A stretch of 64,000 nt of DNA, from contig JAWQFM010000023.1 in assembly GCA_033442325.1 (NCBI GenBank), positions 1,018,533-1,082,532 of the forward strand, read 5' to 3'. How positions within the stretch are numbered: position 1 is the stretch's first letter; each line of letters starts with the position of its first letter. This DNA comes from Salpingoeca rosetta. Lineage: Eukaryota; Protista; Choanoflagellata. The notes under the pieces are model-generated. The model saw nothing but the letters and a program-made list of their open reading frames with translations. It had not been told where the DNA came from and did not search any database. The position numbers were made by a program, and so were the translations under genes. Below, piece after piece: positions 47,599 to 53,502 of this stretch.

Positions 47599-49509
47599 CC
47601 TGAAAGAAACCAACCCAAACAANNNNNNNNNNNNNNNNNNNNNNNNNNNNNNNNNNNNNNNNNNNNNNNNNNNNNNNNNNNNNNNNNNNNNNNNNNNNNN
47701 NNNNNNNNNNNNNNNNNNNNNNNNNNNNNNNNNNNNNNNNNNNNNNNNNNNNNNNNNNNNNNNNNNNNNNNNNNNNNNNNNNNNNNNNNNNNNNNNNNNN
47801 NNNNNNNNNNNNNNNNNNNNNNNNNNNNNNNNNNNNNNNNNNNNNNNNNNNNNNNNNNNNNNNNNNNNNNNNNNNNNNNNNNNNNNNNNNNNNNNNNNNN
47901 NNNNNNNNNNNNNNNNNNNNNNNNNNNNNNNNNNNNNNNNNNNNNNNNNNNNNNNNNNNNNNNNNNNNNNNNNNNNNNNNNNNNNNNNNNNNNNNNNNNN
48001 NNNNNNNNNNNNNNNNNNNNNNNNNNNNNNNNNNNNNNNNNNNNNNNNNNNNNNNNNNNNNNNNNNNNNNNNNNNNNCACCAGACTCATCGAGCAGCGCT
48101 TCCCCTGCAAAGCACGACACAGCGCAACAGCAAGGGTCAGACAAGACACACAGTTTCAATCACACATCAACGTTCGCCCCTCAACCGTTCAAGAGTTCAG
48201 GACAGCAAGCAGCATCCACACACACGCACGAGCCACCTCAGCCATGCACGCCGACATCAGCCAGTAGCTCCAAAGTCAGCTCCCTCATCGGCAGCTTCCA
48301 CGGCAAGAGCAATGGCAACACACTGCCACAGACACATCCCAAACAAGCACCGCCACCACCCCTCCCCAAGAGCTCAGGACAGCCAGCAGCATCCACACAC
48401 ACGCACGAGCCACCTCAGCCATGCACGCCGACATCAGCCAGTAGCTCCAAAGTCAGCTCCCTCATCGGCAGCTTCCACGGCAAGAGCAATGGCAACACAC
48501 TGCCACAGACGCTTCCCAAACAAGCACCGCCACCACCCCTCCCCAAGAGCTCAGGGCAGCAAGCAGCATCCACACACACGCACGAGCCACCTCAGCCAAG
48601 CACGCCGACATCAGCCAGTAGCTCCAAAGTCAGCTCCCTCATCGGCAGCTTCCACGGCAAGAGCAATGGCAACACACTGCCACAGACGCTTCCCAAACAA
48701 GCACCGCCACCACCCCTCCCCAAGAGCTCAGGGCAGCAAGCAGCATCCACACACACGCACGAGCCACCTCAGCCAAGCACGCCGACATCAGCCAGTAGCT
48801 CCAAAGTCAGCTCCCTCATTCATCGTCAGCATCGGTAATCACCGTGCAACACACTGCCACAGACACATACCTTCGCCCACGCGGAAGACCAAAGCACCTC
48901 CGCCAACCACTGCGTGGCACAACAATCCTTTCTTCTCCAGCAACGCCAGCACCAACAGTGCCAGCTCAAGTTGTGGCTCCCACAAACAGCACGCTGCAGT
49001 TGCACTCGAAAACAAGTCTTTGAAGGAGCAGCTGGCCGCCTCCAGAGCGTCTTATGGTAAGCCCCGCGTGCGTGCTGCTTCTGTGCTTTTCGCCTACTCC
49101 TTTCTTCATCCTGCGTCCAATCACGAGGCGTCCTCCACTCACTCTGTTGGCGTTGGAACGCAACCACTCTTTTCCAGATGCTCGCATCTCCGATCTCGAA
49201 CAGCAGTTGCAAGCAGCGAAGAAAGCTTTGAGCGATATGGAGGCCGCCAACGCCGTCACTGGTGAGTTGACAAACTGTGATATGAATAGCGTTCATTTCT
49301 TCGTAAAACATGACGCATCTGTTCTTTCAGTCCGGTTTCGTTCCTTCATTCCACGCACACATCCATGTTCATTCTTGGTCACCCGCATGTGGACATTACA
49401 GAGGCCGCCAAGGAACAGTACAAGACCGAACTTGCGACGTTGACAAAGCAGAGACAAGACTGGGAACACAAACTCGGTTCGTTTACACACACACACACAC
49501 ACACACACG

Positions 49510-49599
<90 letters not shown>

Positions 49600-51794
49600 C
49601 GCGCACACACACGCTCACACACACGAATGCCTGCTGCCTGCTTTCCCTTCGCAAACGGTTGTGCTCCACCTCTGATCTCTCCTCGTCGCTCACGCCACAA
49701 CTCTTCTTCTATTTCATGTTGAAACCCTTGGCTTGTTGCCCACAGAAAGCGTGCTGAACCTGAACATCTCGCCGTCTCGCTTTGCCAACAAGATCCCCAT
49801 TTTCGACATCAACAACAAGCCCGTTGGCGGTTCGTTTGGTTCCCTGTTCAAGGCGGAGCTGGCATGCCAGCCGGTTGCTCTCAAACAGATGCTTGTGGCC
49901 GAACGCCCTCGCCTCTCCGAGATCATTGCCTGCGTTGATGGTTCTGAGGATATTCCTGATCACTTGAAGCAGCTGCGACGTGAGGCGCTCATCCTGCTCT
50001 CGCTTCGCCATCCCAACATCGTTCATTTCGTTGGCCTCACCCACGATGAGCAAAGCCGGACGTTGGCCTTTGTGCTGAGCTGGGCCGAAAACGGATCGCT
50101 CTATGATGTGTTGCACGTGAAGAAGCATCCGCTTGACAAACCAACCCGGCTGCAGATTGCGTACGAGGTGACCTGCGCCATGGCGTTCCTGCACGCCCAG
50201 AACGTCGTGCACCGCGACCTCAAATCGCCTAACGTGCTGCTGGACGCATTGCTCTCCGCGAAGGTGACGGACTTTGGGCTGAGTGCATTCAAGTCGGCAG
50301 ACAGGTCTGTTGTGTCGAAAGTATTTGGCACTGAGCTGTGGGCATCGCCAGAACAGCTACTGAACAGACACGTGCTGCGGGCAGACACGGACGTGTTTTC
50401 CTTCGCCTGCATGGCGTGGGAGCTGTTCCTTAACATCAAGCCATGGTACCACATTGATTTCCCTAACACAGCAGCGCGCATAGATCACATCAGGGCACTG
50501 TACCAGAAGCAACAGTACCTCCCACTCGATGCCGACGTCAAGGGGCGACGTCTAAACCAGCCAGAGAAGCAGGTGCTTCGCCAGTGCTTTGACGTGAGTG
50601 GAAATCGCCCGTCTTTTGCCCAACTTAAGCCAGCCCTACAAGCGATTGTGAGGGATGCCAAGAAGCTGGAGAAGCTGAACAAGGAAAAGCAGCTTAAGCT
50701 GCTGCATGGTCCTGCCGACGCCGCGTGGAAGTGGCACCCAGACATCCTTGAAACACTGCAACCCCGAATGGTGGCTCATCCAACACGCGCGTCAGTGCGC
50801 ATTGCTACTGTAGAAACTGGCCAGAAACAAGCGGCCATTGCAGCGCAGGTGAAGGCAGAAATTCATGGGCTTGCTCACATGACTGCGTGCGTCTCGATGG
50901 CGTGAACAACATGCATCTTTGTGCTGAGAACATGCGTGACTTTCCTTCACCTTTCACACATGCTTTTTCTCTCTTCGCAACCACATTTCACGGCAGATGA
51001 TCACGGAAGCTGGTGGCCGCTCCAGCCATGAGGCCACTGCGAACCCACTCCACCTCTTTGGGACGACCCTCGTTGGCGTCGCTGTTGTGCAGTGCAGCCA
51101 GAAGAACGCCGCCTTCAACGGCGCCGTGCACCGCAACCTCGACCGTTATCGTGGTCACATGAGCAGCGCCAACCACCCGTTCCATCCCAAGTACCAGATG
51201 GATCAGACAACGAGTGCACCTGCTCACCCAGAGGAGGCAGCCGTCCTTGCTCGCGTCACCCTCCACCCTGCTGGCGCTTCACCGTACAAGGTGCTGGATC
51301 AGACCATGATGCAGCCGGATGTGCGTCTTCGCCTGCAGCGCGTGTTCCACGGCGTGCCGTCCTTTGCTGTGGCCATGAGCATCTTGGGCGGCGATTTCGC
51401 ACAGCTGCAGAACCTTGATGCTGGGTGGTACGGTGCTGGCTTCTACTTCACGCCAGACCTGGACTACGCTTTGAGGTACACGAGGAGGTGCAAGGACGTG
51501 CCGCCTGAATTGAGGAAGATGAAGTTGCCTGCAGGCAAGCAGTTCCGCGTCGTGCTTGTGTGTGACGTACAGTACGGCAACCCGTACCCAGTGCTGGGTA
51601 CGTCCTTCAATGGCAAGGCACTCGTTGGCGGGCACGATGCCCACGTTGCCGTGGTTAATTTCAACTCCGGTAACATCGGGGATGCCAAGCCCATCAAGTC
51701 GTCCAAGTGGGCCAGCAAGCGCACCGCCGCCGAGATTGTGATCAACGACCCGTCCTGCGTCCTCGTGCGCGGCATCCTTGTGTTCAAGGGCTAG
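47467..51794 (+). CDS. Multidomain protein: Pro/Ser-rich 59-aa repeats, coiled coil, TKL-type kinase, PARP-like ADP-ribosyltransferase. Exons 47467-47548 (tentative), [gap], about 48079-48834, 48941-49056, 49178-49261, 49402-49476, 49746-50848, 50997-51794
   Basis: Kinase motifs VALK, HRDLKSPNVLL, DFG, GT..W.SPE, DVFSF. ART motifs VFHG, GWYGAGFYFT...YA, LVCDV.YG, EIVI. Junctions from 48941 onward are GT-AG and in phase. Confidence 0.85.
48191..48819 (+). repeat. 177-bp coding tandem repeat; copies start at 48191, 48368, 48545, 48722 (last partial), with a degenerate tail to about 48905
   Basis: Near-identical units with six variable sites seen. Confidence 0.97.
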
Positions 51795-52241
51795 CAGCCG
51801 AGTTCATCGTGTGTGGTTGTTGCCACTGTCATGTTGTGATGTGACCGCGAATTCTGTCATCACCTACATCATCCTTTGGACTGTTGTGGATGTTGCAGTT
51901 CGTTGCAGTTCGTTTACATATGTTTGCACTTGCGTTGCGTTCCATTTCATTGTTCCCGCCACCCCGCATCGTTTGTGGTTGGTCTTTCTCTTGGCTTTCC
52001 GTCTCCACTCTAGTTACAACCATGTTTCATTCTTCCGTTGTCTCTTTCTTTCTTTCGTCCTCAGTATGGTGGATCTCACATCCCATCACTGCACAGCAAC
52101 AACACAGTTACATCAGCGTTCATTCCGTCTCCGCCACAATACAAGAATACAAGGACACATGCCACACAATTCAAACCTTGTGCTCAAGCCAAGTTGCTGC
52201 AAACCAAAAAGCTTTCTTTGTCCACAATGCCCTGCAAGTCT

Positions 52242-53502
52242 CTACTTCACGGTGTATACGAGGATGGAGCCACCGTCGTAGTTTGGCACAAACGCAGTCT
52301 GCAACACTCCAGCCTGCAATGGTGTATATGTTTGGCGCGGGGGGATGTCAGAGTGAGCATACTTGGTGTGTTAACACACACACATACACAACAAGTACGC
52401 TCCCACCGCCTTCCCCTCAAGCCATACCTTGTCAGTGTGTGCTGCGACAACGCCGACAACGCCGTTCACGTCCACGATTGTCGTTCTGCTCGCGTTCAAA
52501 AAGCGGTGTGACACGACGGGGCATAAGGGGACGTGATGCACGGGGCGGCGCCATTGCGGTACAAGACGCGCAAACACGTGCACAGACACGCAGACATAGA
52601 TTCACTGGCATAAACGCAATCGCAGACACACACATACAGATGGCAGGACAGCAAGGCACACATTTGGACATTAATCTGCCCACCAATCCACACTGATAGC
52701 AGCCCTTGACCGCCCCCCAACTCCCACGACACGCGCTAGAGCCAGACCTGTTGTAAGCGTCGCCGTTTGGAAAGAGGTTGTAGGCGGCACGGGAGCCATC
52801 GCCAGCCACGAGGATGGAGGGCCGTGGCGCGGCCGACGACAGCAGATAGGGGGTGAGGAAGCCAGGGGAGGCCTGGTTTGGGCCGGGCTCTGTGACGGGG
52901 AAGTTGGTGGCGAGGGTGCGGCGGCGATAGGTACCGGCAGGGGACGAGGGCAGGTCGTACGCAAACACAGACCCGCCTGGGATGCGTATGTGACGCGTAC
53001 GTGGATGTAACGGTATGTGAGGTGAGGTGAGGTGAGGTGAGGTGATGTGATGTGAGGTGAATGAATGAATGAGTGAGTGAGTGAGTGAGTGAGTGAGTGA
53101 GTGAGTGTGTGTGTGTGTGAGTGTGTGAGTGAGTGAGTGAGTGAGTGAGTGAGTGAGTGAGTCATGTGAGTGAGTGAGTGAGTGAGTGAGTGAGTGAGTG
53201 AGTGAGTCATGTGAGTGAGTGAGTGAGTGAGTGAGTGAGTGAGTGAGTGAGTGAGTGAGTGAGTGAGTCATGTGAGTGAGTGAGTGAGTGAGTGTGTGTG
53301 TGAGAGAGAGAGAGAGAGTGTGTGTGTGTGAGTGAGTGAGTGAGTGAGAGTGTAAGTGAGAGAGAGTGTGTGCGAGTGGGTGAGTGAGTCATGTGATGCA
53401 TGCGTTTGTATACATGCATATACGCGTGTGCGTATTTGTGTGTGCACTCTTCTGTCACGTTGCAGTGTTGACACTCAGTCTGTACCACAAGCCAAGGCCT
53501 CC

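Follow-up and report, generated by a model that had tools for sequence, protein, structure and literature searches.

The human mono-ADP-ribosyltransferases PARP10, PARP12, PARP14 and PARP15 are the best structural matches of the C-terminal ADP-ribosyltransferase (ART) domain considered in this work, which is encoded together with a TKL-group protein kinase by a gene of the choanoflagellate Salpingoeca rosetta (49746-51794, + strand) within a 64,000-nucleotide stretch of contig JAWQFM010000023.1, hereafter the window. The structural alignments with these four proteins (Z 15.8-16.5) cover 172-187 residues, nearly the whole catalytic fragment, and the same proteins and the inactive PARP13/ZAP are among the best profile matches of the window ART family, with identities to solved PARPs of 11-19% in the structural alignments. 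In the profile alignment, the spacing between the two active-site tyrosines is equal in PARP13 and in the window ART. The third triad residue is Val in PARP13, Ile, Leu or similar in PARP10, PARP12, PARP14 and PARP15, and Glu in the window ART, as in PARP1-5. Compared with the human mono-ART PARPs, the window ART has an insert of about 60 residues before the His strand and its own invariant residues (Pro198, Asp214, His216 and Pro232), and its partner domain is a kinase instead of macro, WWE, CCCH or RRM domains. To our knowledge, no animal PARP carries a kinase domain.

Tankyrase (ankyrin repeats-SAM-PARP) also has a C-terminal PARP domain with an H-Y-E triad, placed behind a repeat scaffold, and its fold matches the window ART with Z 15.3-15.6, which implies no orthology. 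A tankyrase-like layout is found in the family member P0008, in which ankyrin repeats (ANK) precede the ART, whereas the window gene has neither SAM nor ankyrin repeats and carries a kinase between the N-terminal region and the ART. The Roco/LRRK proteins, with leucine-rich repeats (LRR) followed by Roc, COR and kinase domains, resemble the window family in that a TKL-group kinase is part of large proteins of several domains, with LRR or ANK at the N-terminus. A further link is that the ART of the family is also located after LRR-Roc-COR in the S. rosetta protein P0016 and after COR in the Didymoeca protein P0064. However, the window gene has no Roc-COR GTPase, and we know of no described Roco protein with a C-terminal ART output domain.

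In the choanoflagellate 'Kinase TLRs' and 'Kinase TIRs', a kinase is joined to an LRR sensor and/or to an NAD+-linked effector-type domain (Richter et al. 2018, PMC6040629), and neither PARP nor ADP-ribosylation is mentioned in that paper. The LRR-kinase-ART members of the window family and the LRR-Roc-COR-TIR-ART protein P0016 are parallel to these architectures, although the C-terminal domain of the window gene is a PARP-type ART and not a TIR. No TIR beside the kinase was matched by Pfam in the kinase and ART exons of the window gene, and within the family TIR was found only in P0016. An NTPase switch (NB-ARC, NACHT or Roc-COR) with a repeat sensor was likewise absent by Pfam from these two exons, the only parts scanned; paralogs of the window gene do carry LRR, ANK or Roc-COR.

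Two PARP surveys (PMC4245714 and PMC2964712), one of which covers choanoflagellates in some detail and recognizes eight PARP types there, mention no kinase-linked PARP, and no paper relevant to a kinase-PARP fusion, to S. rosetta PARP/TKL proteins or to the protein accessions given below was found in the searchable literature. The architecture, which the initial annotation allowed might belong to an already characterized family, is therefore without a description in these sources. The sequence itself is already public: the locus corresponds to XP_004987994.1 (EGD80430.1, UniProt F2US25; P0162 in this work), a protein of 666 amino acids named 'TKL protein kinase', whose public model takes the ATG at 49238 as its start codon and is spliced exactly at 50848|50997. 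The last 33 residues encoded by the upstream exons (48941-49476) match the N-terminus of this protein. Its precomputed Pfam domains include only the kinase, so that what was absent from the public record is the ART annotation. XP_004987994.1 is thus a real, publicly deposited and mis-annotated gene, a new architectural variant within a known enzyme family.

The kinase and the C-terminal PARP-type domain

The spliced product of XP_004987994.1 is probably a cytoplasmic two-enzyme signaling protein composed of an N-terminal heptad-rich region, a predicted competent TKL Ser/Thr kinase, a short helical linker and a PARP-type ART. The initial interpretation has held in its structural part, that is, a single polypeptide with a TKL kinase and a PARP-fold ART bearing an H-Y-E triad, in an architecture that recurs in other proteins, and all the coordinates and motifs first reported for this gene were found again in the sequence.

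The kinase exon (49746-50848, + strand), contained in an open reading frame (ORF) at 49733-50905, encodes a kinase domain at about 49829-50626, followed by the helical linker and, from about 50783, by the beginning of the PARP fold. Pfam matched this exon to Pkinase (E 5e-38) and PK_Tyr_Ser-Thr (E 1.7e-35). The glycine loop, the VALK lysine (49883-49885), the alpha-C glutamate, the HRDLKSPN motif with its asparagine (HRD at 50210-50218) and the DFG motif (50270-50278) are all intact in the window copy. Among the solved kinases, CTR1, RAF and TNNI3K are closest to the window kinase, which is assigned to the TKL group on this basis, and the description of this exon as an intact TKL kinase has therefore been borne out.

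The ART exon (50997-51794, + strand; 265 codons and TAG) holds the remainder of the PARP-type catalytic domain. An exhaustive HMMER search among 1.84 billion representatives has revealed 170 relatives of this ART, 22 of them at E values below 1e-30, and a family profile was built from 69 of the 170. When this profile was compared with the PDB sequences with E values up to 1, 41 matches were obtained, every one a PARP catalytic domain, with PARP13/ZAP (5.6e-07) and PARP4 (3e-06) in the first positions, followed by PARP12, PARP10, PARP15, tankyrase, PARP16, PARP14 and PARP2. Individual matches to PF00644 were found in 45 of the 69 family segments at E<=0.01 (best, 1.6e-13), whereas the NCBIfam scan of the ART gave no match. 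An earlier search of the PDB sequences with the single ART sequence had retrieved only an exotoxin with a non-significant E value (0.83); this identity was discarded in favor of the profile result, and an ART of the diphtheria-toxin or exotoxin-A type was also rejected because neither the profile nor the fold searches gave such a match.

The AlphaFold2 model of the ART, calculated with the family alignment, reached a predicted local distance difference test (pLDDT) score of 95.5 and a predicted template modeling (pTM) score of 0.92, and Foldseek retrieved PARP3, PARP1 and tankyrase as the top matches of this model with probability 1.0. With VIA-align, the model of the ART exon gave Z 15.0 to PARP14 and PARP12 (158 residues, root-mean-square deviation (rmsd) 2.6), and for an extended model (residues 325-666) the alignment with PARP14 covered 175 of its 180 residues (Z 16.5, rmsd 2.5). 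The feature and shape searches of the ESM Atlas and a viral library retrieved only PARPs. The similarity to PARPs is far beyond chance, given the profile E value of 5.6e-07 and the fold Z of 15.0-16.5, so the PARP/ARTD catalytic fold proposed from motif order has been corroborated by profile, models and fold comparisons, and the structural search first suggested as a check, in which the lack of an ART fold would have been unfavorable, has yielded PARPs.

Five residues of the active site were located in the ART exon, numbered from its first codon: His118 (codon 51348, conserved in 61 of 69 sequences), the adjacent Gly119, which completes the His-Gly pair, Tyr150 (codon 51444, 69 of 69), Tyr157 (codon 51465, 65 of 69) and Glu246 (codon 51732, 65 of 69), all on the + strand. 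His118, Tyr150 and Glu246 align with the PARP13 triad positions in the profile alignment, and the intact H-Y-E triad already recognized in the initial annotation is consequently conserved across the 69 sequences, as are the four family-specific invariants mentioned above. The C-terminal domain thus belongs to the PARP clade of ARTs as a divergent member, its H-Y-E triad is intact, and it is predicted to be an enzyme.

The domain might instead be non-catalytic, as in PARP13/ZAP or PARP9, binding NAD+, ADP-ribose or a partner and regulating the kinase. The inactive PARP13 domain is indeed the top profile match, and the sequence of the window ART is divergent, with a score under the Pfam cut-off, low identity to the solved PARPs and invariant residues specific to the family. 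Nevertheless, inactive PARPs have lost triad residues, and PARP13 has Tyr and Val where the window ART has His and Glu, whereas His-Gly, Tyr150, Tyr157 and Glu246 are all present in the window ART and conserved in distant members of the family, so that a non-catalytic domain is considered distinctly unlikely and the reading as a predicted ART enzyme is preferred.

The junction between kinase and ART

The two exons are separated by an intron of 148 nucleotides (50849-50996, + strand) with a GT donor at 50849, an AG acceptor at 50995-50996 and phase 0 on both sides, and the in-frame TGA at 50903-50905 is located inside this intron. The in-phase splice from 50848 to 50997, predicted in the initial annotation, agrees with these boundaries and is identical in the public model. 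The position of the intron between kinase and ART is also kept in the paralogs P0001 (locus L001) and P0003 (locus L002), and full kinase-ART ORFs are present in the transcriptome assemblies of Microstomoeca roanoka and Paulinella, as well as in Apiculatamorpha, in which the kinase was recognized by Pfam and the ART by sequence match.

In an alignment of 26 members, conservation of the ART module reaches about 60 residues beyond the intron on its upstream side (pattern LLHGPxDAxWKF ... SVxIAxL), and this upstream part is present even in members without kinase. In a second AlphaFold2 model (P0162 residues 325-666, pLDDT 90.4), model residues 60-64 form a strand and residues 69-80 a helix across the exon junction (77|78), and the structural alignment with PARP14 begins at model residue 56, 22 residues before the end of the exon. 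The start of the PARP fold thus precedes the intron by about 22 residues, and the ART domain is whole only after splicing; in this model the ART exon alone would miss strand 1 and half of helix 1.

These data bear on the alternative of two products, in which the kinase ORF ends at the intronic TGA at 50903 and the ART is either made separately from the ATG at 50997 or not made. The ART exon does open with an ATG, and X18, a run of unrecorded kind, has a contig that is unspliced over 50775-51106. However, conservation of this Met does not extend to paralogs such as P0003, the conserved module and the first elements of the fold lie upstream of the intron in the way described above, in all members in the case of the module, and spliced reads of the paralog P0001 join at the equivalent point. 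Run X18 is identical to the window over 50065-52171, intron included, but its share of the words of a stretch absent from all RNA runs is 0.96. It was therefore rejected as evidence of intron retention, since it carries RNA-silent sequence like the DNA runs do and has an uneven, enrichment-like depth. Separate products are hence regarded as highly improbable, and a single spliced kinase-ART polypeptide is retained as the reading of this locus. Within 1.5 kb the depth of the X18 contig increases from 22.8 to about 880, with an Illumina adapter at 52171, and this run looks like an enrichment-type DNA library whose peak covers the ART exon and the intergenic region on its 3' side.

The spliced reads were obtained from three stranded S. 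rosetta RNA-seq runs (about 4.6 billion letters read), which were aligned to 49650-52300. The reads over this region are of the expected strand and patchy, with fixed differences and loose ends, and for this reason they look paralog-derived. Sixteen reads from the three runs join 50811 to 50994 with 37 different letters between, and their translation is the exact P0001 sequence over the kinase-to-ART junction of this paralog. The splice is thus demonstrated for P0001 and not for the window copy, and the search for RNA reads across 50848-50997 has given a partial answer, with the equivalent splice in the paralog and no reads from the window copy.

The kinase-ART family and the expression of the window copy

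At least 17 S. rosetta genes encode the same ART, under the names of TKL kinase, Ser/Thr kinase or hypothetical protein, and most of them have a kinase, so the window gene is not a singleton. A second copy of the kinase or ART domain was not found by tblastn in the 64,000-nucleotide window. The domain-architecture search revealed that the order kinase-then-ART recurs in the S. rosetta family and in other protists. The architectures found in S. rosetta and close family members are coiled coil-kinase-ART, LRR-kinase-ART, ANK-kinase-ART, ANK-ART and LRR-Roc-COR-TIR-ART, and more distant members include WD40-kinase-ART, thioredoxin-like-kinase-ART and SidE_PDE-kinase-PARP. In S. rosetta and its relative Microstomoeca, the kinase-linker-ART unit is a cassette that has undergone at least 15 duplications and is found behind variable N-termini (RNI-type LRR, ankyrin or coiled coil). 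A few genes of the family have, instead of the kinase, Roc-COR-TIR or only ankyrin repeats.

Two members have unusual compositions. P0016 (S. rosetta PTSG_11903, 1728 amino acids) has LRR-Roc-COR-TIR followed by the ART module common to the family, without kinase. P0053 (1267 amino acids), from the Paulinella chromatophora transcriptome, contains a SidE-type phosphodiesterase (PF12252, E 1e-29), a kinase and a PARP domain that scores above the PF00644 cut-off, and the presence of a SidE phosphodiesterase and an ART in one eukaryotic protein recalls the Legionella phosphoribosyl-ubiquitination enzymes.

The closest relatives of the window kinase are kinase-ART proteins with at least 45% identity, after which the identity falls to about 32%; the exceptions are the shorter S. 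rosetta proteins P0169 and P0170, whose models lack the ART, and two fragments of unknown origin. As nearly all of these closest kinases belong to kinase-ART proteins, kinase and ART have been duplicated together. A kinase upstream of the ART was found in 30 of the 150 best ART representatives, and in 29 of the 55 with at least 450 amino acids. In the ART tree this trait is clustered (10 changes, compared with 16 when the labels were shuffled) and at least 3 changes are forced by well-supported branches, which indicates either that the kinase-ART linkage is old, with losses, or that it arose a few times.

Most family members have kept both the catalytic residues of the kinase and the ART triad. 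This does not hold for P0001, for the annotated models P0005 and P0158, which lack the DFG motif, or for P0022 and P0023, with degenerate ART triads. A Nei-Gojobori analysis of the window gene (49745-51791) against P0001 (L001:3406-5547) gave ratios of nonsynonymous to synonymous substitutions (dN/dS) of 0.125 for the N-terminal half of the kinase (dS 0.44, 89% protein identity), 0.285 for its C-terminal half (dS 1.17, 57%) and 0.286 for the ART (dS 0.37, 82%). These values indicate that both kinase and ART are under purifying selection, and the uneven dS suggests a mosaic history, with gene conversion or recombination among paralogs. A recent segmental duplication involving P0001 was considered and rejected, because the similarity to L001 is limited to the coding exons.

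The paralog P0001 (XP_004989349.1) has a deletion of one nucleotide within the DFG codons (L001:3925-3965, equivalent to 50270-50278 of the window). This deletion is also present in eight RNA reads from 2026, seen as a loose end at window position 50274, and the public model of P0001 masks it with a pseudo-intron of 29 nucleotides that removes the DFG segment. P0001 may be a transcribed pseudogene and, as it is frameshifted, its junction reads are proof of the splice only and not of a functional fusion protein.

Several results weigh against a functional kinase-ART protein encoded by the window copy. The ART alone does not reach the PF00644 gathering cut-off (18.4 bits versus 26.7, E 0.0016), the mRNA of P0001 cannot encode an intact kinase-ART because of the DFG frameshift, and the 5' end of the gene is cut by an assembly gap at 47623-48077. 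Concerning the RNA, depth was zero over the copy-specific region 50451-50717 in all three RNA-seq runs, and the words of 50440-50996 were present at 0.00 in eight probable RNA contig runs from three studies, compared with 0.86-1.00 in DNA runs. The dips in depth are weak evidence, as some reads were filtered before the alignment, and it was only concluded that expression of the window copy is absent or very weak under the conditions sampled.

The window copy could accordingly be a silent paralog, perhaps in decay, within a kinase-ART family that otherwise functions, and give little or no protein. The lack of copy-specific RNA, both in raw reads and in the probable RNA contig runs, points in this direction, and so do the signs of birth and death in the family (the frameshift in P0001, the missing DFG of P0005 and P0158 and the degenerate triads of P0022 and P0023). 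On the other hand, the window exons are all open, with intact catalytic residues and canonical splice sites, the dN/dS versus P0001 is 0.13-0.29, the sampled RNA may come from a non-inducing culture, and zero depth has limited value for the reason indicated above. A decaying copy is thus judged rather unlikely, and the two-enzyme protein remains the preferred interpretation of the gene.

Upstream region, proposed mechanism and significance

Three heptad-rich exons precede the kinase exon (48941-49056, 49178-49261 and 49402-49476, + strand), with GT..AG boundaries and an open frame. In the best register, 67% of the a/d positions are hydrophobic according to a crude count made without a coiled-coil predictor, and paralogs have weak coiled-coil Pfam matches at the equivalent place. 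The coiled coil placed before the kinase in the initial annotation therefore stands as a heptad-rich stretch, recognized by eye and by this count only. Further upstream, Tandem Repeats Finder (TRF) detected a tandem repeat (48190-48819, + strand) of 3.6 copies, 98% alike, with a 177-nucleotide unit that corresponds to 59 amino acids rich in Pro, His and Ser. A GT..AG intron at 48835-48940 would link these repeats in frame to the heptad-rich exons, and they may be a predicted 5' coding exon of the kinase-ART gene, outside the public model. The predicted spliced model is open from 48080, comprises 976 codons and runs into the assembly gap.

With a G+C content of 56%, scaffold gaps and introns of the GT..AG type, the window is eukaryotic. 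The 269-nucleotide intron before the kinase exon contains a long (CA)n microsatellite (49486-49625). On the other side, a convergent gene on the minus strand (52037-52300) is highly expressed (RNA depth of 120-350). The ART stop codon is separated by some 240-260 nucleotides from the 3' ends of this gene, which map near 52037 and 52057.

From the sequence we infer that the kinase and the ART are coupled and that both are active enzymes. In the proposed mechanism, the N-terminal module would bind a partner or drive oligomerization, leading to activation of the kinase by trans-autophosphorylation. Phosphorylation would then gate the C-terminal ART, or would be gated by it, and the ART would use NAD+ to ADP-ribosylate itself or its substrates. 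Defense or stress signaling as the output of the kinase-ART protein is a guess, which is based on the lineage-specific expansion of the family, the LRR, ANK, Roc-COR and TIR partners, the frameshifted yet transcribed paralog, the mosaic divergence among paralogs and the silence of the window copy in culture.

A broader proposal, put forward tentatively and with low confidence, is that choanoflagellates and several other protists possess an unrecognized class of dual-enzyme receptors, in which a repeat or coiled-coil sensor would switch on a TKL kinase (or a Roc-COR GTPase) that gates a PARP-type ART effector, and this effector would modify targets or consume NAD+ as part of a pre-animal innate-immunity or stress module. 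The TIR/SARM1-type NAD+ effectors are the comparison for such a class.

Among the main writers of reversible protein modification are the PARP family and the protein kinases, and the genes of the kinase-ART family are labeled as plain kinases in the public annotation because their ART falls under the Pfam threshold. S. rosetta is a close relative of animals, and the kinase-ART idea is directly testable in this organism because it can be transfected and its genes can be edited. Provided that the ART is an active enzyme under the control of the kinase, these proteins would constitute a simple natural system for the cross-talk between phosphorylation and ADP-ribosylation, and a candidate pre-metazoan defense or stress effector.

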